DNA from: Ylistrum balloti
Lineage: Eukaryota
Reading direction: 5' to 3'
DNA: 64,000 nt
Assembly: GCF_031769215.1 (NCBI RefSeq)
Contig: NW_026782032.1
Span: 434,001-498,000 of the forward strand
Below the pieces are notes generated by a model. It made no database searches, had not been told where the DNA came from, and worked only from the letters and a program-made list of their open reading frames with translations. Both the position numbers and the translations under genes were made by a program. Below, piece by piece: positions 48,421-64,000 of the stretch. The stretch's first letter is position 1; each line of letters opens with the position of its first letter.

Positions 48421-50456
48421 ATGTTCAAGAACACATTTCAGAGTGGCTTTTTATCAATACTATACAGTATTGGAAGTAAACCCTTACAGATTTGGGACAA
48501 AAAGGTAAGAGAATTATCTTTGTGTGAGACGACAGTTATCAGTCGATCGCCATAGTGACATGGCTGGCAACAAGTGCATCGAGTGCTTCTTACTTGATAT
48601 TTAGTCAATAAATGTTGATGATTAACTGTATTTTTACATTTAAACATTTAAATAATGATCAAAGACATGTTATATTTTGTCAAACGGCATTTTAACCAAC
48701 TTTTTATTATAAAAATGATTCGAGATATCTAAAACGGAAGTGGCTGTAACAGTTTTCATTGTGTATTACATACATATGCCAGTTTATGGCTTCGGTTAAA
48801 ATTCTTCTCCCATGTTAACTGTATTACGTATGTCACGATTAATTAACATTATTATTCTGAAGGAAATAAGACATTATACTTTAAAAATCGTATAGACATT
48901 GCGACGAAAACGATTCAACAATTGATCTGCATGTAATCACACGTGTTTACTCTATCAACAGCAATCATTGAGGTTCTGTTTAAATTTAATCGAATATTAT
49001 TTCAAATTTACCACAAGATAATGTAAAGACTTATTGTCATTATTGTTATCACAATATGTTTCTGGGGAATTAACATTTAACTGATGATGTACTCGTAATG
49101 TTACCGTTGCTATGATGTGATCCGCCATTTGCAATTTTTTTGTTTATTTCGTTTTCGACAACGAAGACAGTTTGAATTTAAATTTGCGTTATCATTGTTT
49201 TTCAGGTGCGAAATGGTCACATAAAACGTATCACAGACAACGACATCCAGTCTCTAGTTTTAGAAATTGTCGGTACAAATGTTAGGTAAGTTGTATCAAT
49301 ATCAAAACATAAAAATTGTGGAGAAGTTATCTCCCCTGTTGTTAAAGATGAAAGATAATGAGTCACTTTTCATTTTAAAAACGGTATCGCTTCGTTGTTT
49401 CTATAAACTGTTGATTAAAATTTCTTTATGAAATTATTTCATATCATTGTTTTGAAAGTATGCATGTATGATAAATTTCCATTTGCTCCTGAAATTTGTT
49501 TACTGAAGGTTTCAACTTTTAACAGCAATATATAGCATATAGACTACTGCAAAATAAATTACATTTTAGTTTTTAAATTAAGGCCAAAACATAGTTCCTG
49601 TGGATATGATGGTTGAATAGTAAATATTGATGGCATATATTTTTTCTTTTGCAGTACAACATACATCACATGTCCAGCAGATCCAAAGAAAACACTGGGT
49701 ATCAAACTCCCATTCTTGGTCATGATCATCAAAAATCTCAAGAAATATTTCACATTTGAAGTACAGGTGAGTACTTATTGCATAGGTGATGCTTGCAAAT
49801 TACTGGTGCTTAAATTCATCAGTTTTTCAATATAGTTTTTGACACATTTCAATTTCAAAAGTAAATTTCTTAAAATTGACATTTCAAGAAAGAAATTACA
49901 TATTTTTTAACTTCGTTTCCAAATATTCATTCACATGTTGCGTGTGTAATTTCAGGTTTTAGATGACAAGAATGTACGAAGGCGTTTCAGAGCAAGTAAC
50001 TACCAGAGCACAACAAGAGTGAAGCCCTTCATCTGTACTATGCCAATGAGGTTGGACGATGGCTGGAATCAGATTCAGTTCAACTTGTCAGATTTCACAA
50101 GAAGAGCTTACGGAACAAATTACATTGAAACACTTAGGGTTCAGGTGAGTTATAAACCTTTCACATTTGAATTATCAAATAAAATGGTTACTGAACCACA
50201 AAGAAATTTGAACCATAATTCAGAAATTAATTTTCTAAATCAGGCTTTTAAAATTTGACAAAAAAAAATTGTGCAAATGGAACAAAAAGTCTGAAACATG
50301 TTCACTAAGTAATTTCCTATGTTCTTGTTTTTTCAGATTCATGCAAACTGCAGGATCCGTCGTGTGTACTTCTCAGACAGACTTTATTCAGAAGATGAAT
50401 TACCTGCAGAATTCAAATTATACCTACCAGTACAATCGAAGCAACAAAATAAATAA
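48421..50456 (+). CDS. CFAP20: Cilia- and flagella-associated protein 20 (BUG22), complete, 194 aa
   Basis: Exons 48421-48504, 49206-49285, 49655-49766, 49956-50144 and 50337-50456 encode [109 protein letters not shown]...[19 protein letters not shown], near-identical to CFAP20 as recalled. Confidence 0.99.
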
Positions 50457-53400
50457 CATCATTTTGACATTAAACATTGACAATGTATATATATATGCAA
50501 CAAATTTTAAAAATGCTACTCAAGAAGAACAACAATGTGAAAAGAAATTAGGAAGAGGACATTTTTCAGGCAGTATGATCATCGGGCATGGCTCAATTAA
50601 ATTGTCATCGAGCACTAGTAATTCTGCCAGTGTTTACAGTCAAAGATATTCATTATGGAAACAGGATGGGGAAGATTGTACCATAACATAGTGCTGTCTT
50701 GTGATATCAAACCAAAAAGTGAAATGCCATGGCCATTGCTGAAGTGTTCATTTTACAATCATATCCATGTACCTGCCTGTTGTTGAGTGCTAGTTAAGGC
50801 ACTTAATAGCCATATTTAATATTTAAAACTAATGGCCATTTCTCCACAAAATGAACAAAACAATCTCAGGAATATTTTTGGCAAAACACTGCAGTTATAC
50901 AGGGGATGGCTAGCTGAATTTCGATTATGTGAACTCATGCCAGATGAAAGAAATTTTTATAAATGTTGGAATAAAGATAACTAGAAATGAATCTAGGTGT
51001 CTTGTATTCAGTTGGGGATATGTTGCAATATATACCAGATTACTTGTTAAAACTTGTTGAACGTATGTCCCAACTTATCATCACAGTAAAATCTCATTTC
51101 AGTCCGAGTCATGGTAATATTACAAATGTTACTACACACATTATGATCAATTTGTAAATACTTCCATATAGTAAATAAATTGTATATTGATGTACATACA
51201 TGCCAAATATACTTATCAGTTATATTTGTTGTTTTTCAATCACAGACTCTATTAGGGTTTTACACGATCAAGCACTTTGGTCTGATGGGGAAAAATGATA
51301 GAAATAGGCAAAGAGAGTTTTGTTGGAAACTTGATTTACACAGTGGGTGATGTGTGGTGACAAATTTGAGCACCACGAAAAAAAAAGGTTAAAAGCATGG
51401 ATGATATCCGAGTGCTTGAATTGTAATTCCCATACTAGATTCTGATTTGTAGTCAGTTAAAAGACTACTGATGAATAGAAGATCAAGAGAATTCAAAATT
51501 TCTGAGTCCCACCTAAGAATATTGGATTTCTTTGAAAAGGTTTGGATGATATGCTGCTACACCTTCAGACAACTGGTTTAAAAATGAGACTAAATTTATA
51601 CCACCATCAAACTGTTCACAGTTACAGCTTAATTCTCTTTAAAAAATTGTGTTTAGACGGGTTCCTTGAGAAGTATAGTCCAACATAACCAAGACGCAGC
51701 ATTTAGAAAGACTAGTTGACACCTCAACATATCATTAGGGATGCTGAGAGACTGGACTTGGGTTTCAACTTGGTGAATATTTTGGTTTCTTGTAAAGTAC
51801 TTGTACTTTTCCATTCAAACATGGAATAGGATTACATTGTAGAATATACATTTGAATGCACCGATTAGATGATATGAAGTTTACTTTCTTGATGTAGTTT
51901 CGAGACAAAAACTTTGACTTTGAGACGTGACTACTAAAGTTAATATTCACTTCAGATTTAGTTTAGAGACATACTGAAACGACTGCAAAATTTCAGACAA
52001 ATTTTCTGCTACCTCATTGCAAAGGGTAATTTAGGGGTAATGTCATATATGTGTATCTCCGATGCACATATTAAAAGTAGTTTCCTATGCTAATTGTAGT
52101 ACCTCTATTCATAAAACAAACGATAGTTATGGTTAACGGAAAAAAAATTCTGCTTTTACGAACAGAATATCTTGGCACACTAGCCTATTGGCGCAGCCTG
52201 CCAACATGACTTTGAAATATTGAAACCTGTGTGCAATGTATAGTATGAAATTAGGGATATACACAATGTTACTTCTGTTATTGAGTCAAAACATCTGAAA
52301 TGGTGATTAGTGTTAACTTAGCTGATATTTGGGCTTCATCTGAACTACGATGTTCTGTCGGGAAACTGAACCAGTTATGTGCATGCCAAAATTTCTCTAT
52401 CTGAAAATAGGAACCATTGATTTCATACGAAAACAAATTCCATTAAATTTTACACGTTTAAAAGAAAGAGATTTGATTGAACTTAATTTTGATATCACAG
52501 TAAACTCACAAATATTTGATGCCAGATATATAATTTAACTTTTAAATTTTTGGAATAATTTACATCACAAAAATGGACTTTAATGTTGAACACTTTGTTT
52601 TGATGAAAAACTATAACATTATATGGTGTTAAGGAATTTAACTCAATGATCCAGGAAAAGGACCAATTTACCAATCCAGGGTTGATGAAATCCAAATAAT
52701 TTTACATCTTAACTGTGACTGATTATGGCAGAGTCAGTAGATAACAGAGCAAATACAGGGATAGTTTTCGCTCCACTTACTACGATTAAGTGATGTTATA
52801 AAGCATTAGAAAGCGTCTTTGTTTTAATCTCTATTCACGTCTTTTTATAATATGTATCAAACTTTAATGATGATGTTCACTATAGGAATATGAAATGAAT
52901 TGAGAACTGTCTACTCAAAAGATATTATCTAGCTACATTTGCCTACATTTCATTCTGCCCCTAACATTAATTTAAAATGCAGGTTACGCCAATATCATTT
53001 AAATTTTTACCAGTACATAAACTGACATTAATGAAGGAATATCAAAAGTAATTAAAAAACTGAAAAAAAATCTCTTCAAAGATGAATATTGAAAATAATA
53101 AATAGAAGCATCATGCTTCGTTTAGCTGACATTCCAGGGCATAACCGCCTCATATTGTATTTACCTTTATCCTTTTGGTATTTATAACGCATATGATTGC
53201 CATCTGCAAAACTAAACGACGCTATTGATGTTACCTGGTTACGTGACTCTTGAATTCTACATATGGACTTATTAATGGGATTGCCTCTTGCTTAGCACAT
53301 TTCTGTAATCTCATACTGCATTCATTTAATCTGATTTGAGTGTGGATATTTATAGACCAGCTTTTTGATACCGGAAGGAAATTAAGAGTCACAATCGATA

Positions 53401-55783
53401 GACAGAAAAAAAACGTGTTTTTGAATAAACAATAAATCAAGCAGCTAGAAATGTGAACCGGACAGGAGTCTAAAACACTGTGTTAAACATTAAGTACAGA
53501 TTTATTCGTAAGTGTCGATATATTTCAGTAAATTTTGAATGTAACAGTAGCACTTCCCATTTAGCAGGGAAATAATTGGCAATGTGACATTTACGAAAAC
53601 AGGAGAGGTCTGTGTGCTAGGTGAACAGTCAACTGACTGTACTGTGTAATATCGATAGTTTTTCTATCTTAATTGTCCGACAGCACGTTCCACTTATGTG
53701 AAGTCTTGTTCAACCTTCACTACAACACGCGGTATGTACATATACAGGTAAGAAATGACACTCGCTATACTATGTCGTTAAGGGGGGAGACACAGCAATG
53801 TGTACGTTTAAAACCACATTTTTTTTACTGGACGTTAACACACAACCAATAATATCGTATGTTTCTTGGAAAAGGTTTCGTGTTAGTCAAAGCACACTTC
53901 ACTGAATGAATCTTTGTGTATGGGAGTTTTCTTTTTTTTTTTCTCCAGCTGAACTTTTAAATCGAATTTACGTTTCCAGAGGTATAAATTTGATTTAAAA
54001 AAAAAAAAAAAAAATCAATAACATTTTCAACTCTATTTGAAAGAACTTACTTATACATATTAGCCTATAATAACGCAAAGGTACACCACGGGATTTTTAA
54101 AAATATAAGTTCCTTGATCTCTCGAGATTTTCCAATGTCTATTCTCTGATTTAAGTTACAAGTTATTTCATGAATTGCGTTTAGTTTCTTATTTACACAG
54201 ACTTGGCTATAGTCTTTATCATAGTCCATAATTTTACAAAATATTAGCCACCCGTGATACAACTTTAAGTGTTTGTATGAATCGCCTTATTATTAATATC
54301 TAAATCGAAAAGGTTGAGAATGTGATTGTTAATAAACGCAAGAATCCCCTGTGCTGATTTATTTTGCATCGGTATAATTAACAAACAGGTAACTAAGCAG
54401 CGGTGATGTAGCAGTGCTCATCATCTGTCGCCGCCCAGATACAGATGGGCGGGGATGGGCAGCATGCATGCAACCCGTTCGGTGATATGAACAATTCAGA
54501 GGCGCATACGTCATCGCCTCCGCCAGATAGTGTGTCGAATCGAATAAAAAAGTTCTTTGATGAATCTAATAAATTTTTATAATCAGTTTGTGCGCGGGAT
54601 TGAAAATTCATCAACTATAACTATTCTCTTACTTATTCTTAAATTGCACATATTACAAAACAATATCACATAACATTGATTACGTTAAAAGCGATCAATG
54701 TCTTGTTTTATTTATTAACTATCCAATCCTCAATCCGGAAATCGATTTCACTTGTACTTGTATTGTGACACCGACATGTGCAGTCTGGTGTATACGTTAC
54801 CATGGATATTAACATGCAGACAGAGACAGGAGACGGTGGGTGGAAGGCCATTTTTTGAAAATTAATTGATTATTCCAGGAATCCAGACCTGACTGACGTT
54901 GTGTCAGTTTTGACACATTATCAAACTCGTTTACATTGAATATACTATTTACGGTATCATATTAAAAAAAATACATTAACAACACAATGATTGTATAAGC
55001 GATAACATTTACAGGTCAACGAAAGACTAGAACGATGAGCTCGTGATATACCGGAAAGTCATCATGTTATTGGTCTGTACACGTAGAAGTGTTTTGCCTT
55101 GAAATGCCGTTGTCAGGGAAAACACTGAAACTAGTCGTTAATTCAGTATCAATTTAAAATTTAGGACAGTATAAACATGGAGGATTAATACTTAGAAGTT
55201 TTGCCAAAGCACCTTTATATTCTCGTCCATTGGTAATCAAAACTACAGTACAACTGTTATGCTGTATGTTCAGTATCCATGGCATTGATGGGGGCGTGCA
55301 CGTACACGCGGAGAGATAGAAACACGTGCAGTCACGGCATAATCAATATCTGAGCTAGATAGAAATTCCAGGAACATTAAGTACCACGTGACATTCTATC
55401 AACGATATCTTCTAATATTTCAATAGGGGAGTGATGTTGTCATTGAAAACTCAGTTGTATTTATTTGTAATTATTGATAATTTACATATCTAATCCATGT
55501 CTTCGTGGACATAGGCCAAACTGATGTTTTTTTTCTAGTGCCGTGTTTCAAAACAAATCGATATGCACCACATTTAAATCATGCACGATACTTGTTTCAT
55601 GCGTAATTTTTTGAAGTTAAGTGAGCCTATACTTCTAGCTGTATCTCGTGTCGTCTAGATAACAATTTGTTGTTCACTGTAAATCTTCAGAAACGTCTTT
55701 GTTTACGGTATCCAGGAAGCAGAGACAAGACAGGACTATACTCGCACATGTGTAACTGTTTACGTTCGACAGAGGACACGCCC

Positions 55784-55791
55784 ACTTCCGG
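55784..55791. promoter_or_regulatory. ETS-type motif (ACTTCCGG) in the CpG-rich region upstream of the ligase-like gene
   Basis: Motif about 170 nt before ATG 55962; CACGTG E-boxes at about 55323 and 55385. Confidence 0.3.
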
Positions 55792-55961
55792 TATTACATA
55801 CTCGTTTCACAGAACTACTTATGTGTTACTCAGATGTTGCATCTTCCTTATCACGGGTAACTCACGTGATATTACATTATTTGTGCAATCAAAAACTTCA
55901 TAACCAGAAGTAATGCAAAACTTAGCGAACACTGAAAGCAAACGGGTACGACATAAGTGAC

Positions 55962-58900
55962 ATGGCTTCTGCAACGGGACATCATGACCAACTGAGACAA
56001 TGTATTCTAGATAAGTTGGATGGAAATCCATTTTACAAAGAGACAGATGTGTTTCTGAAGTTATTATTCGAGAGATCACTTTTGAAACAAGACCAAAGGG
56101 ACCACGAACAAGCTGAGAAGTAAGTTGGTTTTTCGTTATCTTGAACGGGACTAATGGAAGGGAAGTAACTCTAGATATGAATTGTATACAAGTATTACTG
56201 ATAATTGTGAAAACTGGTGAATTATACCTTGGCTATCTTATTATCCACTATTTTTTTTTATAGAGGCTCAATAATATTCCGCGAAGATGACGAAGAAAAT
56301 AATTCACTAAATACATGAATGAAATGATAAAAAAAAAAGAGTATAATGTATTTAATAACTAATTATTTTTATCAAAATATAAATGACATGCTTTTAAATT
56401 AAAATCTTTACTGTCAGGTGGTTATTTTGGGCCCGGCATGAATCCAAACTTCGGTGTGTGAAAGCTGGTGTTCCAATTGGTATTTTGCCAGAGGGTATTG
56501 AGGGTGAATTGGTAGATGTCAAAGTTTTCTCCAGAGGGCCTGATGATGCTATTTATGACAACAACGATCTTATCAGACGCAAGGTTTGTAACACCCGACA
56601 TCATGTAATTTAATAATTTTTTATTTAATCAGATACAAGTTCTATGATTAGTTACTTCATCTTCTTCTAAGGTATCTAGTATATTGGAGAAAAAAAGAAC
56701 CCATCATTACATAGATATGAAGGGATCCTGAAAGTGAGTTTTGATAGCTCAGTGGTAGTAATGTTGGCATACACAACCACATTTGAAGTTATGTGGTTGA
56801 AGTCATTCCCAACCTTAACAGTTCGTATTTCTCAGGAAGCTGAAATAGGGATAGGTATATGTGATTGTGTCGTTTGCAAGAGATTATTCCAATTACTCTT
56901 GACTGCCTGTGAGGAGCCTCCTGCATGTTGTTCAGTGAAACCTTGCCACAAAATTACCCAGGCTGTTGACAGGACAATAAACCCAGCTATTAATCCACCA
57001 ATCAATAGAAGTCTGTAGAATCGAGAACCAAACTCATATTGGGTACTAACTTGGTAGTCCTTGGTGGTGTTTTTCTACATGCTCAAGTTCAGATCAACAT
57101 AATTATGATATTTTGATGTTTGACCAATATAATTTACATGCATTTCAGAATTTTGAAACCCTAAGATGATGAAAGTGATAAAATTTACTTTATTTTAGTA
57201 GGACTTTTCATTTGTTGTGATGGAGCTAAAAACTTTAAAATTTCAATTTTTGTGATCAGTTCCTAGTGTCATAATTCATCCATCGAAAAATGAGAAAGAA
57301 ATCTGCTGAACTAGGTCAATTTTTTTCTTTAAAGTCATCAATATGATGACTCCTTCCATCCATCTGTCCATCCGTCCGTCCATCCATCGGGACATTCTGC
57401 CATCCTTCCGTCCGTCTTCACCTGCCATCATTCTTAAATTTTGTGTTTTATTTCATTAAGTGAGAAAGAAGTCTGTTGAACAAGGTCAATATTTTTTCCT
57501 TTAAAATCAATGTAGTGATTTTATAGGCTTTCCTATAAGAACAGGTTTTGATAAAAAATCATGAAAACTTTTATCAATCACTTGATATTTGTAGGTGGCA
57601 AGAGGTAATTGCTTCCTCCACCTGACATCGGGACCAGAGACAGGTGTGTCATGTGTTCTACAGGCCATGAAAAAGTTTACAGGAGGCCTGGGTGATGATG
57701 ACGACAGAGAGAGTGGAGACACTTTTGTATGGCAGAAGTATTTCACAAAGGTTAGTAGAAAATGATGAACACAAAATACTTCTATTTCTGAAACACATAC
57801 ATTTTTTCATTTGTATAGGAATATTAGTAATGAAAACAGAGAGGAAGATCTACCGTAAAGTCATTGAGATTTGTGGGGGATTTTTGTTGTTGTTGATTTT
57901 ATGGGTCAACTGAACCTAGAAATTCATATACCGATGAATTGTTGAAATTAGTATAAGTACATATTTTTATTTATAGTTTACCATGAAATCAAGTGTCTTA
58001 GAAAAAGTTAAAAACCACATAAATTGAGTCCCACAAAAATGTGATCCTGCAGTAGTATGTACACAACATTCTTATTTATCTACTTTTGTTTAGTGAATAT
58101 AAATTTTTCTTTACAAACAATGAATACTGTGTCTTTTGTTTAACAATATTGGATATTATGATATAGAGAATACATGGTCAGTGTCTTACAATGTAAGCTG
58201 TGTTTTGGCGAGGGTTAAGAAAGTGGCTCACCACTTTTGCCTTTCTGTATTCTATCTATCCAGCAACATTGATTGAAAAGCAGACTATTGAAACTTAAAC
58301 AGTTTGTGTTTACCTGACATTGATGTTACGCTGAATTGTGCCTGATTACGGACATAAAAATAATTGCTCCGCGTGGAAACATAGTTCCAAACTTCATTGG
58401 ATATTACAGCGATTTATGTTTATTCATCAATAAACTTGTTCATTACAACATGTAAAATCACTTATTTCGACTACTGTTAATATTTCTAATCGTAACATTT
58501 AAGTAAATTTAGAGAGTAATTCTATCAAATTACCACATATGCTAAAATACAGCTGTTTTCTGTCAATGCCAATCTTTTAAGATCAAATAACAAAATAATT
58601 TTTCCTTTTTTCTGATTATTGTTCAATATTTTGTTACATTAGTCCCTAGATGATGCATCTGTTGTCATAGCAACAAGGAAAGCCAATGGAGAGGCAGCCC
58701 ATTTGAGCTGTTGTATGATTGGTGGAGAGTATGTGTTGTGCGGGGGCTCCAAAAATGTTCACATGCTTTTCAGGAGAAAAGGTAAGAAAAAAAAGTAAAT
58801 GAAATAAAATTGTTTTACAGTAATTTTGTTCTGTATGTAATAGAAAACCATATTCTGATTTCATTTAATGGAAAATTTAAAGTTATGTTTCACAGAAATT

Positions 58901-61900
58901 TGAAAAATTTTATTTAATTTAAATCTGAAATTTCTCAATACATTTTCAATAGATAAGATTTTGTTTACAAGTGAATATTTTTTCTGTTGTTATCAGCAAC
59001 TCATATATATGACAAACAAATTAAATAGCTGTTATACATATCATTAGATACAACAAAGGTTTTACATATTACTTCTATACTTAATCTTCTATAAGAGGAT
59101 ATCAGAAGATATGGAGAGCCTCGCTTCCGTATTGCCAGAGAGGTGTGTTCGACGATCATGGACTCCATAGATAAAATGAATCCCCAGGAGAAGGAGAGGT
59201 AAAACATTAGTTCAACATGTCTTATATCTTTTTTTATGTTGAAGTTTATAAATTTAATATTTTGTAAATTGACGTAAAAATTTTTGAATTTTGATGTTTA
59301 ATGCTGAAACTTATGTAACACTTTAAACATTACTTTACATATAGATTTGTATTCTCTATAGGCTGTTGAAATTCCTGGTGACAAGTAAGTTCACTGGAGT
59401 GTTTGAGATCCTCGCACCTGACCACCAACATGTTGAAGATCTTTCTCATCTGTCTGGGTAAGCAGTGAACTTGGTGCAGAGGAATGGTCGAAGGGAGATA
59501 ATTTGAAAAAAATTTGGCAGTGAAAATTCTTCCTATATCCTATTTCTGAACCTTCTCTCTATATTGATTAAAAATCAATAATTTGAACATTTGAAGTTTT
59601 TGTTACCTTCAAAATGAATAATTACAAGGATAGGATCACAAAGGTGATTATTTTACATACTTAAGTAGCAGAAATTGCCACATATTATAAATCACAGGGA
59701 CTTGGCACTAATTACAGACCCCATGGTCCATATATATATGTATATATGGTTGGGAATTCACGCCAAGTCCCTGTGCAGTAAACCTTGATATATTTTAGGG
59801 TTTCTTTTTTCGTTTTACTTGGGAAAGAGGCTTTTTATCTCATTTTAGGAAGAAAATTGATCAAATGGGATGGAAATTTTAAGGAGTGAACTATTTGTTT
59901 TGGGAATCATTTCATGCATGTATTATGAAATAAATCTGACGTGGCCAATATTCTGCCATATTCAGTGTGGTAGCCACTAGCTACTTTAAGGAGATGCTTT
60001 GGCCTGTTTTTGTTTACTGTGCTTGGTATGTGATTTTTCATAAAAAGATATATTGAATCCAAAATACCAGAAGTGTGAATGATATTGCTACTGTTTCAGT
60101 CCAGAGCTACACTTTATCACATGGACACGCTGTGACCTTGACCCCTCAGGAGAAGATGTGGCAGCTGTTCCACCACACATTGGTATAGAGGTAAGGTTAC
60201 ATGCCCACCTATGTTTTTTCCCTATGCATCACTTTTGTAATGTTTGCTTTAGTTGTACACTGGTCTTCTGGTCTATCTGTAAACCTCTCAACAATTTAGA
60301 AATATCATAATGCTGTTGAACATTGTTAATTTGAACTCAGAAAACCTGTTTGACTTAGAGTACTTTGTCTGTCCTGGCAAAATTCTCTCATTATGTAAGT
60401 AATAAAATCTTGGAAATTCTTGAATTTCGAAAACTTGATAAACTCTGATAATTCAAAGTAAAAATCATAATAATACTCTCTAACCGAAGTTAAAAATTTA
60501 AGTCATAAATAGCACAGGCTGTCCAGCGTCCCTAAAATTCCTAAAAATTCCCAATTATTTTCAATTTTGCTAAAATTCCTAAAAAAAAATGAAAAATTTA
60601 AAGGGAATTCCTAAAAAAAGCCCTAATTTTTCACTTCAGTTCCTACTTTTTTATATTTCTTACAATTTACTGAAAATGTTTTCATTAAATTTATACTTAA
60701 AATGTATTTTAATGTAGTCTGTAGTTCTAATTCAGGGTAGACCATGAAAGGCAGTTTAACAGTGGATCTATGTACCCAGATTGTTATTGGTTGTGACTGA
60801 GTGACAGAGGTGTGATTCTTAAGGTCACAGCCAACAGCAGCTGGGACACTGAAACCCTGGAAGACACCTTTCCTGCTATTAAGGCATTGTATGTTAGTTT
60901 CTATTTTGTCAAATTTGCAACGGTAAGTCAGTTTAATGCTTTCATACTCCCTATTCTAGTTACAAAATTCCTTATTTTAGCCCTAAAATTGCCCTAAAAT
61001 TTTGTAATTTTAGCCCTAATTTTTTGTCAAGAAGTGCTGGACAGCCTGATAGCACTTTGAACTTCTGATGAGGTTTTAAAAGCGACAAACTGTGTCTTGG
61101 TACATTGTTATCAAAAGACACTGTATGCTCCAGTAGCACTTTAATTTTTGAAGAAAAACATGTTCGTCTAATATTACTATAAAACAATTTCTGATTTCAT
61201 AAATTTTGATTAAAAATAAAATGGTTCTTAAGTAAGCCTTTTATTAACACTTAAGCTTATGATAGTGTGATATGGAAATATGGGTAAACATACAGTCATG
61301 TGATGTACACTTATAGATTTTAATACTTTTTATAATTTCCAAGGAAAAGCACATAAAAATGACATACATTGTATTTATGTTGTATAGATATTTTCTAGTT
61401 CCCTACAACTTATTTGTTTCTAACTTTACAATCTTACCTAAATTGTATTACAGTCATTTGTCATAGGTTTTACCATAGGTCCTGCTGTACTCTGATTCAG
61501 CGCCATAATGATACATTTCATTAATGTGTAAAAGTGTCTCTCTTGGGGTTGACAGATTCAGTATTACCAATATTTAGTTTAAAAAATATTTTCATTCAAT
61601 ATTATAAATATTTAGAATGAACAGTGAAGCAAGATGTGGAAACATTCTTTATTTTTTTTCAATGATTAATCTCACATAACAAACGTTCATGTACAATGGA
61701 TACTGGTTAATAACATGATCCATTTGTGATGGATAATGTGATAATAAACTGATCTTTTATTTGGGAATCGTGAGATGTGAATAATCGGCCATTAGGGTAG
61801 CTATGATGTTTACATATGGCATCCAGGAGTGACGAATGGCTGTTGAGTTCTTGTCCTCACTTACCTGTGATTTACCTGTGTTTTTTTAATGATAGTTGTC

Positions 61901-64000
61901 ACAATGAAGCGATATTAAGCATTGTCCACATAGAAATAAATCACAATATCAGATGTTGATTACATGAAATATATAGGGATTAATGAGATGTTTGAAGCGA
62001 AATGTGGTATTAACTGGAAAGGGACATACACTTAATGACATTAAGTGGTTTCCAATGAATTTCCTTGTAGAACCACTAAAAGAAAAACTGTATATTTTTT
62101 CCACAGATAGCTCAAGCTTTAGGTCTAAAGACAGTTAAATACAACAGAGTAGACATCCCAGATCTGGACAAAAGGATGAAGGAGGTAAAAAAAGTTAGGA
62201 TCTGTTCAGCTCCTGAATTATTTTGCATACATCTTAATTTTAAGTATACAAGTAATGATATAATGAATACCCCAGGGAAATTTAAAAAAGGTGATTTATA
62301 CAACAATACAGAATAGTTATATAAGTAATACACAGTATTACAGGGCTGAGAAGTTACCAGTGATTTTTTGTGTCATTTTGTTACAAGAATTTTGAAATTA
62401 ATTGAAATGTCATTAATTAAATGGGTTAACAGCATTTTACTTTGAAAACAAAACCTGAGCAAAGAAATATATATGCGAACATATTGTTGACCTTGCAGGT
62501 CAGACCTCAACTCTCTTATGCATTGGAAACACTTTCTGATAAAAACTGTAATTTTTTCCCCCCAGATACGAGGAGGTTACCAGTTTGAGGGAGAAGTGTT
62601 ATATTTCCTTGACAATCAGGGGGTAGTCATGGGACTTCTAAAGAAGAAGACAGTATGGTAAGGTTATGTGAGGATTCCTTCAAACATGACCAATAAAGAC
62701 AGTGAGAAAATTCTCTACCCACACTTATAACACTTTACATATTTATATATGGCATATATTGTTTCCAAAAAGTATATTGGAAACTTTTTAATTAGACGCA
62801 ATCAAATTTGAGAGTTTAATTATTTTTTGGCAAATTGCATCCACAAGAATTCCTATATCAACAGTATATAGAGACTTCATTTCGTGCTATCATGTAGCGG
62901 AATAGTTTCAGCATGGATGTGCTGAATCAAGATCACCGTTTAAACTTGTATGTATGTTTATAGTGTTTATTCTGGTGATTAAAATCATCTTGTTGTTATT
63001 GTGACGATACCTAAGTAACTCACTTCGGTATCATTTTTTTGCCTACTGTGACACAAAAAAAAACAAAAAACAAAATGAAATGAGGCCAAACATCTGTGGA
63101 TCACTATGGAGACCATAGATATAGAGCTGAGTAGTCTTATTCAGCCAGGCTCTTGTAGTCTATACACACTATTAAGTGAATTGAACTGTTATATGCACCT
63201 ATCAATTTAACGGTGCTGACAAATGAAAACCAAAAGTGACAATTTCATAGTACTACATTTGACCAGATAGTTGGATAATGAATCAATCAAAGATGAACGA
63301 GACTGACATCCGGTAGGACTTAAACTGTGATGTAGTGAAATATGCTTTCTGCAATATTTATAAATAATAATTGATCAGGTGAAAAAATAGTTATGAAATT
63401 TCTTTCCATTTATTATATGTTTATGAAACTTGTCACAAATTTTTCGTTTTTATCTCATCAAAGGAGAAGTTCTCAGATTTGGTTCATAAATCACATATGA
63501 AATGGAAGCTCTGTTGTATTTATCAAGATAAGAAGGCACTAGAGAATTCATAAATTTGGGGTGGACGGATGGTGCACTGGGTAATGTTCTTACCATTAGC
63601 CAGGTTTTCAGGATTTCAAATCAATGATATTCCCTGCGTATGCAGGTTTCCTCCCCTAGTAATATCCTTGATATTCTTTAATCTGGGTCAAAAAGGGTGA
63701 TTTATTGGTATAACTTGTTTGACAGTTGTTGTAAAAAGAATTTAGCAAATTATTTTATAACTACACATATATCTGCTGTATTTAGGGCTGTGACAGGGAT
63801 ATGTTTTAGTTTCATGCTTGTGTGAAAGAAAAAACCTTTTTACAAATTTATCATGAATATGCTAAACACAATCATTCAGCATGCAAACCAACTTAAGATA
63901 ATGGAATGTGTTTTTGTTTCAGGTACATAATGTGCCGAGCAATCAGGGAAAAGCTACGGGCTGCATGTACCTCACTATCAAAATACAGGGAAAAATTCAC
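55962..64000 (+). CDS. Uncharacterised protein; predicted ATP-dependent RNA ligase of Trl1/T4 Rnl1 type (first 10 exons, about 385 aa; continues beyond the window)
   Basis: Exons 55962-56119, 56418-56583, 57595-57750, 58643-58781, 59096-59198, 59362-59457, 60100-60190, 62107-62184, 62566-62657, 63923-64000+. All GT-AG with matching phases and no stops. Motifs: ARG..F..KKF, TRKANGE (I), GGSKN (Ia), TGVFEI..DHQHV (III), FEGEV (IV), LKKKT (V), YIMCRAIRE. The gene structure is high confidence; the function is inferred. Confidence 0.8.
57280..57520. mobile_element. HINE-like remnant: two ~60-bp direct repeats about 170 bp apart around a (CCAT/CCGT)n microsatellite
   Basis: TGAGAAAGAARTCTGYTGAACWAGGTCAAT at about 57290 and 57460. 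Confidence 0.35.
59693..59775. mobile_element. 83-bp MITE-like element with perfect 14-bp TIRs
   Basis: CACAGGGACTTGGC (59693-59706) / GCCAAGTCCCTGTG (59762-59775); internal (TA)n hairpin; no TSD found. Confidence 0.6.
60515..61048. mobile_element. 534-bp non-autonomous DNA transposon (hAT-like), intact
   Basis: 13-bp perfect TIRs CAGGCTGTCCAGC/GCTGGACAGCCTG; 6-bp TSD ATAGCA at 60509-60514 and 61049-61054; subterminal CCCTAA(AATT) repeats near both ends. Confidence 0.88.

Follow-up and report, generated by a model that had tools for sequence, protein, structure and literature searches.

An intron-rich gene at positions 55962 to 64000 of the 64,000-nucleotide stretch of Ylistrum balloti DNA analysed here (the window) encodes, with a probability of roughly 80%, a holozoan stand-alone ATP-dependent RNA ligase with the architecture of the Trl1 ligase domain (Trl1-LIG), a putative 2'-phosphate-dependent chemistry and a probable orthologue in BfRNL, the ligase of the amphioxus Branchiostoma floridae. 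The scallop ligase does not represent a novel enzyme type; it is of note mainly because its family, DUF7920, still lacks a functional annotation. In current reviews, RtcB joins tRNA and XBP1 exons in animals and RLIG1 is named as the animal 5'-phosphate ligase, the lancelet enzyme having so far been treated as a curiosity. With DUF7920 connected to Trl1-LIG and to BfRNL, this gap is closed, and a yeast-like sealing enzyme appears to be common in invertebrates, alongside RtcB.

Gene structure

Ten exons on the forward strand, spliced in a script, give a frame of 385 codons with zero stops, and all introns are of the GT...AG type. All 385 residues of this frame (100%) agree with the first 385 of RefSeq XP_060066417.1, which is filed as an "uncharacterized protein" of Y. 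balloti and, at 605 aa, has 220 residues beyond those encoded in the window. This agreement is far beyond chance, and the gene is real and intron-rich. Taken on its own, each exon is an ORF of only 26-55 aa, so that the gene is invisible in an ORF list, as the initial annotation had claimed for its ten in-phase exons. The peptides quoted there and the codon of the presumed catalytic Lys were all recovered at the residue numbers and positions given: TRKANGE at 171-177, GGSKN from 194, FEILAPD from 255, FEGEV from 336, LLKKKT from 353 and WYIMCRA from 360. A gastropod protein is collinear with the scallop model (E 1e-137). An Rfam scan of positions 49000-64000 found nothing. The features are as follows.

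55962..56119, + strand: exon 1, from ATG, residues 1-53, ending in phase 2; N-terminal helices; matches the start of XP_060066417.1
56418..56583, + strand: exon 2, residues 53-108; beginning of the Rnl1-like N-terminal subdomain; D86, D96 and R106 invariant
57595..57750, + strand: exon 3, residues 109-160; R111 at 57601-57603, K135-F136 at 57673-57678
58643..58781, + strand: exon 4, residues 161-207; motifs I and Ia
58673-58693, + strand: motif I, T171-R-K173-A-N175-G176-E177; K173 codon AAA at 58679-58681
58748-58762, + strand: motif Ia, S196-K197-N198-V-H200
59096..59198, + strand: exon 5, residues 207-241; helical insert separating motifs Ia and III
59362..59457, + strand: exon 6, residues 241-273; motif III E256 at 59405-59407
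59429-59431, + strand: H264 (exon 6), candidate 2'-phosphate-site histidine
60100..60190, + strand: exon 7, residues 273-303; motif IIIa aromatic F278 at 60113-60115
62107..62184, + strand: exon 8, residues 304-329; both flanking introns missing from the amphioxus gene
62566..62657, + strand: exon 9, residues 330-360; motif IV E337-G-E-V340 at 62587-62598, motif V K355-K-K357 at 62641-62649
63923..64000, + strand: exon 10, residues 360-385, running past the window; R365-x-x-R368 at 63936-63947, start of the helical C-domain

It had also been suggested that kinase or CPD domains might lie beyond the window. This is not borne out, as all that the protein adds 3' of the window is the helical C-domain, a low-complexity tail that is disordered and a single helix at the end, and the full-length 605-aa XP_060066417.1 has no kinase or CPD match in Pfam. 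Residues 483-582 are disordered.

Family assignment

The scallop protein matches Pfam PF25536 (DUF7920) with 41.1 bits over residues 84-367, above the gathering threshold of 27 bits, and DUF7920 is likewise matched by all 45 aligned relatives. The search against PF09511 (RNA_lig_T4_1, covering T4 Rnl1 and Trl1 ligase domains), proposed in the initial annotation, gave no match for the scallop protein at the gathering threshold of 28.3 bits. Sub-threshold matches to PF09511 occur in 12 of the 45 relatives (E <= 0.1; best 3.5e-6; listed scores 16-19 bits), which indicates remote homology rather than membership by that model; PF09511 is carried by 75 of the 100 nearest clusters in the ESM Atlas. 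Neither phmmer with the full-length scallop protein nor hmmsearch with the 45-sequence family profile retrieved a ligase, Trl1 and Rnl1 included, from the PDB sequences, so that the family cannot be placed by sequence comparison alone. Exon 4 alone sufficed to retrieve the family, single exons searched against Pfam and PDB giving just a weak DUF7920 match (exon 4) and chance antibody and G-beta matches; exon 3 alone was uninformative against the ESM Atlas.

Predicted fold

The AlphaFold model of the scallop protein has a pLDDT of 81 and is confident over residues 1-480. In a Foldseek search against PDB, fungal Trl1-LIG structures take the first 7 places (E 4e-11 to 7e-10), followed by T4 Rnl1 (8e-9) and Rnl3. 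Identity to fungal Trl1-LIG (PDB 6N0T, 6N67, 8RBJ, 9QW7) is only 15-17%, and HMMER does not detect the similarity. In AFDB Swiss-Prot, the top 3 are Trl1 of Candida albicans, S. cerevisiae and S. pombe, matched over their residues 1-393. The structural alignment with Trl1-LIG starts at model residue 22 versus chain residue 21. The Trl1-LIG/Rnl6 clade is defined by a distinctive all-helical C-terminal domain, residues 328-406 in Chaetomium (PMC6379707), and the scallop model has such a domain. The predicted architecture thus holds as an Rnl1-like N subdomain, a nucleotidyltransferase core and a Trl1-type helical C-domain of the 'Rnl6' clade. Compared with Trl1-LIG, the scallop protein has a 10-residue acidic loop (GGLGDDDD) ahead of motif I and three N-terminal helices as extras, and it lacks the kinase and CPD domains to which the ligase is joined in fungal Trl1.

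Active-site residues

The covalent nucleotidyltransferase motifs I, III, IIIa, IV and V are all present, in order, on the nucleotidyltransferase fold. Across 140 relatives, catalytic and 2'-phosphate-site positions are 97-100% conserved. Indeed, K173, N175, G176, S196, K197, N198 and H200, as well as E337, G338, V340, K355, K357 and R365, are kept in 140/140, R368 in 139/140, E256 in 139/139, H264 in 137/139 and F278 of motif IIIa in 135/139, whereas position Y342 of motif IV is Tyr in 120/140 and Phe in 19/140; R111, K135 and F136 are invariant. The conservation of the motif Lys and Glu residues in orthologues, which the initial annotation had made a test of its proposal, is thereby established.

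Residue equivalences to Trl1 were based on motif pattern, spacing by eye and global superposition of the predicted structure. By pattern and spacing, E256/H264 would correspond to E218/H227 of Chaetomium Trl1, and the spacing H264-F278-E337 (14 and 59 residues) equals that of H227-H241-E300 in the same enzyme. The 18 residues from the motif IV Glu to the motif V Lys, already pointed out for the scallop gene, match yeast Trl1 E266-K284. H264, R365, R368 and N175, equated by pattern, are spaced like H227, R334, R337 and N150 of Chaetomium Trl1, in which R334xxR337 is the proposed 2'-PO4 site (PMC6379707). The His...RxxR arrangement is described as unique to the Trl1 clade and has been assigned to 2'-PO4 binding (PMC6379707). 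Two positions differ from Trl1: the motif IIIa aromatic is Phe in scallop and His in Trl1, and Y342 stands where Trl1 has the motif IV Arg (R305 in Chaetomium, R271 in yeast, the latter essential) that contacts adenine N1 (PMC6379707). The link to Trl1 is thus one of predicted structure and of motifs matched by eye. Fold, motifs, residue conservation and conserved introns agree and support a Trl1/Rnl1-type covalent nucleotidyltransferase encoded by a metazoan gene, and the AlphaFold and Foldseek check, with Trl1-LIG on top and T4 Rnl1 next, upholds this central claim of the initial annotation.

Proposed mechanism

The chemistry, the 2'-phosphate requirement and the partners are assigned here by homology. 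K173 would attack the alpha-phosphate of ATP to form ligase-(lysyl)-AMP, with a catalytic metal held by N175, E256 and E337, the alpha-phosphate by K355 and K357, the gamma-phosphate by R111, K135 and K197, and the adenine stacked by F278. AMP would then be passed to the RNA 5'-phosphate, giving AppRNA, which would be attacked by the 3'-OH of an end also bearing a 2'-phosphate. The latter may be bound by H264, R365, R368 and N175 and would be kept at the junction. The 5' kinase, the 2',3'-cyclic phosphodiesterase and the activity removing the 2'-phosphate would act in trans, as in amphioxus.

Alternatively, the protein could be a generic Rnl1-like repair ligase that, like T4 Rnl1 and human RLIG1, joins plain 3'-OH/5'-PO4 ends; it would then need no 2'-phosphate and have no link to heal-and-seal splicing. 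This is unlikely, as the Trl1-LIG match is clearly better and spans the Trl1-specific C-domain that the Rnl1 match leaves uncovered, the Trl1-clade-specific His...RxxR residues (PMC6379707) are essentially invariant in the family, and the probable amphioxus orthologue is described as requiring the 2'-PO4. T4 Rnl1 (PDB 2C5U, 5TT6) has a C-domain that does not correspond to that of the scallop protein, and neither a 2'-PO4 site nor a 2'-PO4 requirement.

RLIG1/C12orf29 is a human ATP-dependent 5'-3' RNA ligase acting on 5'-PO4/3'-OH RNA ends (PMC11494293). No RLIG1/C12orf29-titled entry was found among the 50 best fold matches of the scallop model, and an RLIG1 match was rejected on this ground. 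Both are animal ligases of the ATP-dependent type, but they belong to different families; amphioxus has a separate C12orf29 orthologue. The 'sealing-only' tRNA ligase of Mucorales, a homologue of Trl1-LIG, is monofunctional as well; it depends on a 3'-OH,2'-PO4 end and on healing enzymes in trans (PMC10946426, PMC10680797). The sequence of the Mucorales enzyme nevertheless identifies it as an orthologue of fungal Trl1; the animal family forms a lineage of its own that has diverged much further.

Relation to the amphioxus ligase

Family searches returned one amphioxus member of DUF7920 (a single cluster), which shares about 53% of its residues with the scallop protein. Between both genes, 7 introns agree in alignment column and phase, the scallop gene having two introns more. 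The scallop gene is thus orthologous to the sole amphioxus DUF7920 gene.

BfRNL (gi 260818956; Englert et al. 2010, PNAS 107:16834) is the 5'-phosphate RNA ligase of Branchiostoma floridae, a stand-alone enzyme. It is described in the literature as Rnl1-like, with weak similarity to the ligases of yeast and plants and no match to the RNA_lig_T4 model of Pfam, and as requiring a 2'-PO4 and complementing trl1-delta yeast that is given a kinase-CPD. BfRNL and the scallop ligase are both stand-alone proteins of about 480 residues with no healing domains, Rnl1/Trl1-like and missed by PF09511; the scallop and Pecten proteins are longer by the disordered, low-complexity tail, which accounts for about 120 residues. 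The amphioxus DUF7920 protein fits every published description of BfRNL, with which it is equated by description, sequence aside. Furthermore, an interpolation from gi to XP numbers, calibrated on one published gi/XP pair, puts gi 260818956 at the place predicted for XP_002604648, to within about 200 in a set of roughly 28,000 proteins. On this circumstantial evidence, the amphioxus protein is very probably BfRNL, and the scallop gene most probably the orthologue of this biochemically characterised enzyme. The earlier suggestion that the lancelet enzyme may be unrelated finds no support, given the shared introns and the descriptive fit of the single amphioxus member.

More improbable still is a distinct uncharacterised animal family, with BfRNL arising from another amphioxus gene, under which the originally claimed novelty would stand. 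Database names tie neither DUF7920 nor any amphioxus member to BfRNL, the comparison is by description and the interpolation has a single calibration pair; yet amphioxus has just one cluster, its features (stand-alone, Trl1/Rnl1-like, missed by PF09511, 2'-PO4 site present) are those expected, and the gi falls at the expected place. A straightforward BfRNL orthologue, in a family found across invertebrate phyla and choanoflagellates, is most likely instead; orthology to a ligase already characterised is an outcome that the initial annotation had itself named as refuting its proposal. A ligase-like pseudo-enzyme or another covalent nucleotidyltransferase, such as a DNA ligase or capping enzyme (types ranking lower in the fold lists), is scarcely credible.

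Distribution and inheritance

Named matches of the family include no vertebrate, tunicate, echinoderm or nematode. Members were found in molluscs, annelids, nemerteans, bryozoans, flatworms, rotifers, tardigrades, crustaceans and a springtail, as well as in hemichordates and choanoflagellates, every database entry being labelled "uncharacterized" or "DUF7920". An enzyme similar to that of the lancelet is thus widespread in invertebrates, its active site and 2'-phosphate site being all but unchanged across the groups found. Identity to the scallop protein follows a species-like gradient, with 88% for the Pecten maximus orthologue, 61-63% for oysters, 54-60% for gastropods and 53% for amphioxus. 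Together with the conserved introns, this gradient rules out contamination or recent gene transfer, in agreement with the initial annotation, and the gene is inherited vertically.

It is possible, though doubtful, that DUF7920 is the ancestral holozoan sealing enzyme, acting independently of RtcB in 2'-phosphate-dependent tRNA joining or repair or in XBP1 exon joining; such ligases would have been kept in most invertebrate phyla and the pathway would be physiologically relevant. In copepods, the family version is fused to a PheRS-type B3/4 tRNA-binding domain, which, if DUF7920 is such an ancestral ligase, points to tRNA as the substrate.

Gene structure and protein identity

Positions 55500-64000 were read, their ORFs were listed, and exons were joined at canonical splice sites by script. 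The ORF listing of this region contains no long ORF, the coding pieces of the gene appearing only as fragments of 26-56 aa. The joined exons encode 385 codons, stop-free and open at the window end, with GT...AG borders on all introns, which confirms the ten in-phase exons that the initial annotation had described as hidden from the ORF track; every peptide and residue number that it gave proved correct, as did the position of the K173 codon (58679-58681).

Exons of the scallop ligase gene (all with GT...AG splicing)
55962-56119, +, exon 1
56418-56583, +, exon 2
57595-57750, +, exon 3
58643-58781, +, exon 4, holds motif I
59096-59198, +, exon 5
59362-59457, +, exon 6
60100-60190, +, exon 7
62107-62184, +, exon 8
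62566-62657, +, exon 9
63923-64000, +, exon 10, continues past the window end

Exon 4 alone (46 aa, with motif I), searched against 1.84 billion representative proteins, returned 77 matches, including full-length proteins of 455-490 aa with which the spliced model is collinear, e.g., a 487-aa Nucella lapillus protein (E 1e-137). A second search with the latter as query retrieved P0098, the full-length scallop protein XP_060066417.1 (605 aa, "uncharacterized protein LOC132546716 [Ylistrum balloti]"), which is 100% identical to the spliced model across all 385 residues; the NCBI gene model and the ten-exon model agree. Identity to the scallop protein drops with phylogenetic distance, from 88% in Pecten maximus to 61-63% in oysters, 54-60% in gastropods, 56% in a hemichordate and 53% in amphioxus.

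Family and predicted fold

The Pfam family PF25536 (DUF7920) is matched by P0098 and by all 45 aligned relatives. PF09511 (RNA_lig_T4_1) is reached only below its threshold: the Pfam search gave no match in P0098 itself, and 12 of the 45 relatives match below threshold (best E 3.5e-6). Among PDB sequences, no ligase was found with P0098 or with the family profile. Database names of the relatives are "uncharacterized", "hypothetical" or "DUF7920", save a few spurious "actin-binding protein ipp". In NCBI, 'actin-binding protein ipp(-like)' is the name given to several gastropod orthologues (Biomphalaria, Plakobranchus, Elysia marginata); because they carry DUF7920 only, this looks like propagated misannotation.

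An AlphaFold2 model of P0098, built from the 45-sequence alignment, has a mean pLDDT of 81 and is confident for residues 1-480. In Foldseek against the PDB, its first seven matches are all ligase domains of Trl1, the fungal tRNA ligase (E 4e-11 to 7e-10), followed by T4 Rnl1 (8e-9) and then archaeal Rnl3, Rnl5 and Rnl2. Against reviewed AlphaFold models, the three highest-ranking matches are the Trl1 proteins of Candida albicans, S. cerevisiae and S. pombe, aligned across roughly their N-terminal 390 residues. An independent protein-language-model search also pointed to ligases of this type: of the 100 nearest clusters, 75 carry PF09511.

Past the window lie 220 residues of P0098, completing the helical C-domain at about residue 477, followed by a Ser/Gly/Asn-rich and acidic disordered tail (residues 483-582) and one terminal helix. 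For the kinase or CPD domains that the initial annotation placed there, if present at all, a Pfam search of full-length P0098 gave no match. The tail, in which 'GSSNCGSSNS' repeats occur, is common to the Ylistrum and Pecten (587 aa) proteins; most orthologues do not have it and stop at 460-490 residues.

Active site and predicted 2'-phosphate site

The residues essential to Trl1 of yeast and of Chaetomium are listed in PMC6379707 (Table 2 and text). Equivalences were drawn from local pattern, spacing and global superposition, and every listed residue has a scallop counterpart with matching local pattern and spacing.

Equivalent residues of Chaetomium Trl1 and the scallop protein
ATP gamma-phosphate contact: R99; scallop R111
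ATP gamma-phosphate and adenine contacts: K120-F121; scallop K135-F136
Motif I: T-L-K148-E-N-G; scallop T171-R-K173-A-N175-G176
Motif Ia: S-K169-H-S; scallop S196-K197-N-V-H200
Motif III: E218; scallop E256
2'-PO4 site histidine: H227; scallop H264 (by pattern)
Motif IIIa: H241; scallop F278
Motif IV: E300-G; scallop E337-G338
Motif V: K323/K325; scallop K355/K357
2'-PO4 site RxxR: R334xxR337; scallop R365xxR368 (by pattern)

The spacings from the histidine to motif IIIa and on to motif IV (14 and 59 residues) equal those of Chaetomium Trl1, and 18 residues separate the motif IV Glu from the motif V Lys, as in yeast (E266-K284). Among 140 relatives, each 400 aa or longer, the mapped active-site positions are 97-100% conserved. 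Two positions differ: the motif IIIa aromatic is Phe in place of the His of Trl1, and in motif IV the Arg with which Trl1 reads adenine N1 gives way to Tyr or Phe in the scallop family (Y342). Fold, motifs and conservation together support the ligase interpretation. According to PMC6379707, the His and RxxR that bind sulfate occur in the Trl1 clade only and account for its 2'-PO4 requirement; since both are invariant in the relatives, the same requirement is predicted for the scallop ligase.

Distribution, descent and relation to the lancelet ligase

Named relatives occur in molluscs (gastropods, bivalves, a chiton), one annelid, nemerteans, one bryozoan, one flatworm, rotifers, one tardigrade, arthropods (barnacles, copepods, an ostracod, a springtail), two hemichordates and Branchiostoma and, outside animals, in three choanoflagellates. 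Vertebrates, tunicates, echinoderms and nematodes are absent from the 120 best matches to the amphioxus protein, down to 38% identity. The amphioxus gene was retrieved and its exons derived exactly for intron comparison. Seven of its eight introns share alignment column and phase with scallop introns 1-6 and 9, and exons 3-6 are equally long in both (156, 139, 103 and 96 nt), which marks the gene as ancient and vertically inherited. These common introns and exon lengths exclude contamination or recent transfer, already doubted in the initial annotation.

That the gene might encode an unknown animal ligase, or one unrelated to the lancelet enzyme, is not supported. BfRNL, the Branchiostoma floridae ligase of Englert et al. 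2010 (gi|260818956), is described in PMC10946426 as rescuing yeast trl1-delta if kinase-CPD is supplied, and in PMC4408790 as Rnl1-like and dependent on 2'-PO4. Amphioxus genomes hold one DUF7920 cluster only, including XP_002604648.1 (BRAFLDRAFT_126791), which by description matches every published account of BfRNL taken up here. From the single published gi/XP pair, GI:260834895 = XP_002612445 (PMC3750612), XP_002604648 is expected at about gi 260818956 if ~2.04 gi numbers are allotted per protein; interpolation at exactly 2.0 leaves an offset of about 170 proteins. Published descriptions and gi interpolation thus make it very probable (roughly 0.9) that the amphioxus DUF7920 protein is BfRNL. 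If this identity holds, the scallop gene is orthologous to that of a ligase already characterised, an outcome that the initial annotation itself had named as refuting its proposal. DUF7920 probably represents the animal Trl1-LIG/BfRNL family and is far more widespread among invertebrates than recent reviews suggest.

Proposed mechanism and longer relatives

With residue roles as mapped onto Trl1, sealing would follow the classic three steps: the ligase lysine would be adenylylated, AMP would then be moved to the RNA 5'-phosphate, and the 3'-OH of a 2'-phosphorylated end would attack. Amphioxus encodes a CNPase-like PNK/CPDase apart from its ligase (PMC5434554); end healing would likewise be carried out in trans here, and the 2'-phosphate would be taken off by a Tpt1-type enzyme. 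For the scallop protein, we infer these steps by homology.

Longer relatives include P0165 (Neocalanus flemingeri, a copepod, 709 aa), P0180, P0183, P0186 and ~20 more marine-metagenome proteins of 640-710 aa; in several of them the DUF7920 ligase is followed by a putative C-terminal B3/4 domain, with scores just under threshold (22-29 bits vs 29.3). Phenylalanyl-tRNA synthetase beta has a tRNA-binding domain of this B3/4 type, and the putative fusion hints at tRNA as substrate. In P0056, an 802-aa relative from a Logan assembly, a P-loop kinase-like AAA_33 (residues 16-118, E 3e-5) lies N-terminal to a DUF7920/RNA_lig_T4_1-like ligase domain, the reverse of the Trl1 order.

Neighbouring gene and intronic repeats

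50019-50700, +, exons of CFAP20 (cilia- and flagella-associated protein 20)
57351-57388, 12-nt tandem repeat in intron 2
60515-61048, MITE-like insertion in intron 7

The CFAP20 exons lie on the same strand, about 6 kb upstream of the ligase gene, and the residues encoded by 50022-50147 match Pfam CFA20_dom (E 1e-16). The MITE-like insertion (about 534 bp) is bounded by perfect 13-nt terminal inverted repeats at 60515-60527 and 61036-61048. Within it lie a second inverted pair in sub-terminal position, at 60569-60583 and 61000-61014, and repeats of 'cctaaaat'. The intron 2 repeat, TCCGTCCATCCA in 3.2 copies, adjoins two similar ~40-nt stretches at about 57293 and about 57463, reading 'gagaaagaa(a/g)tctg(c/t)tgaac(t/a)aggtcaat...', and together they suggest a small repeated element.
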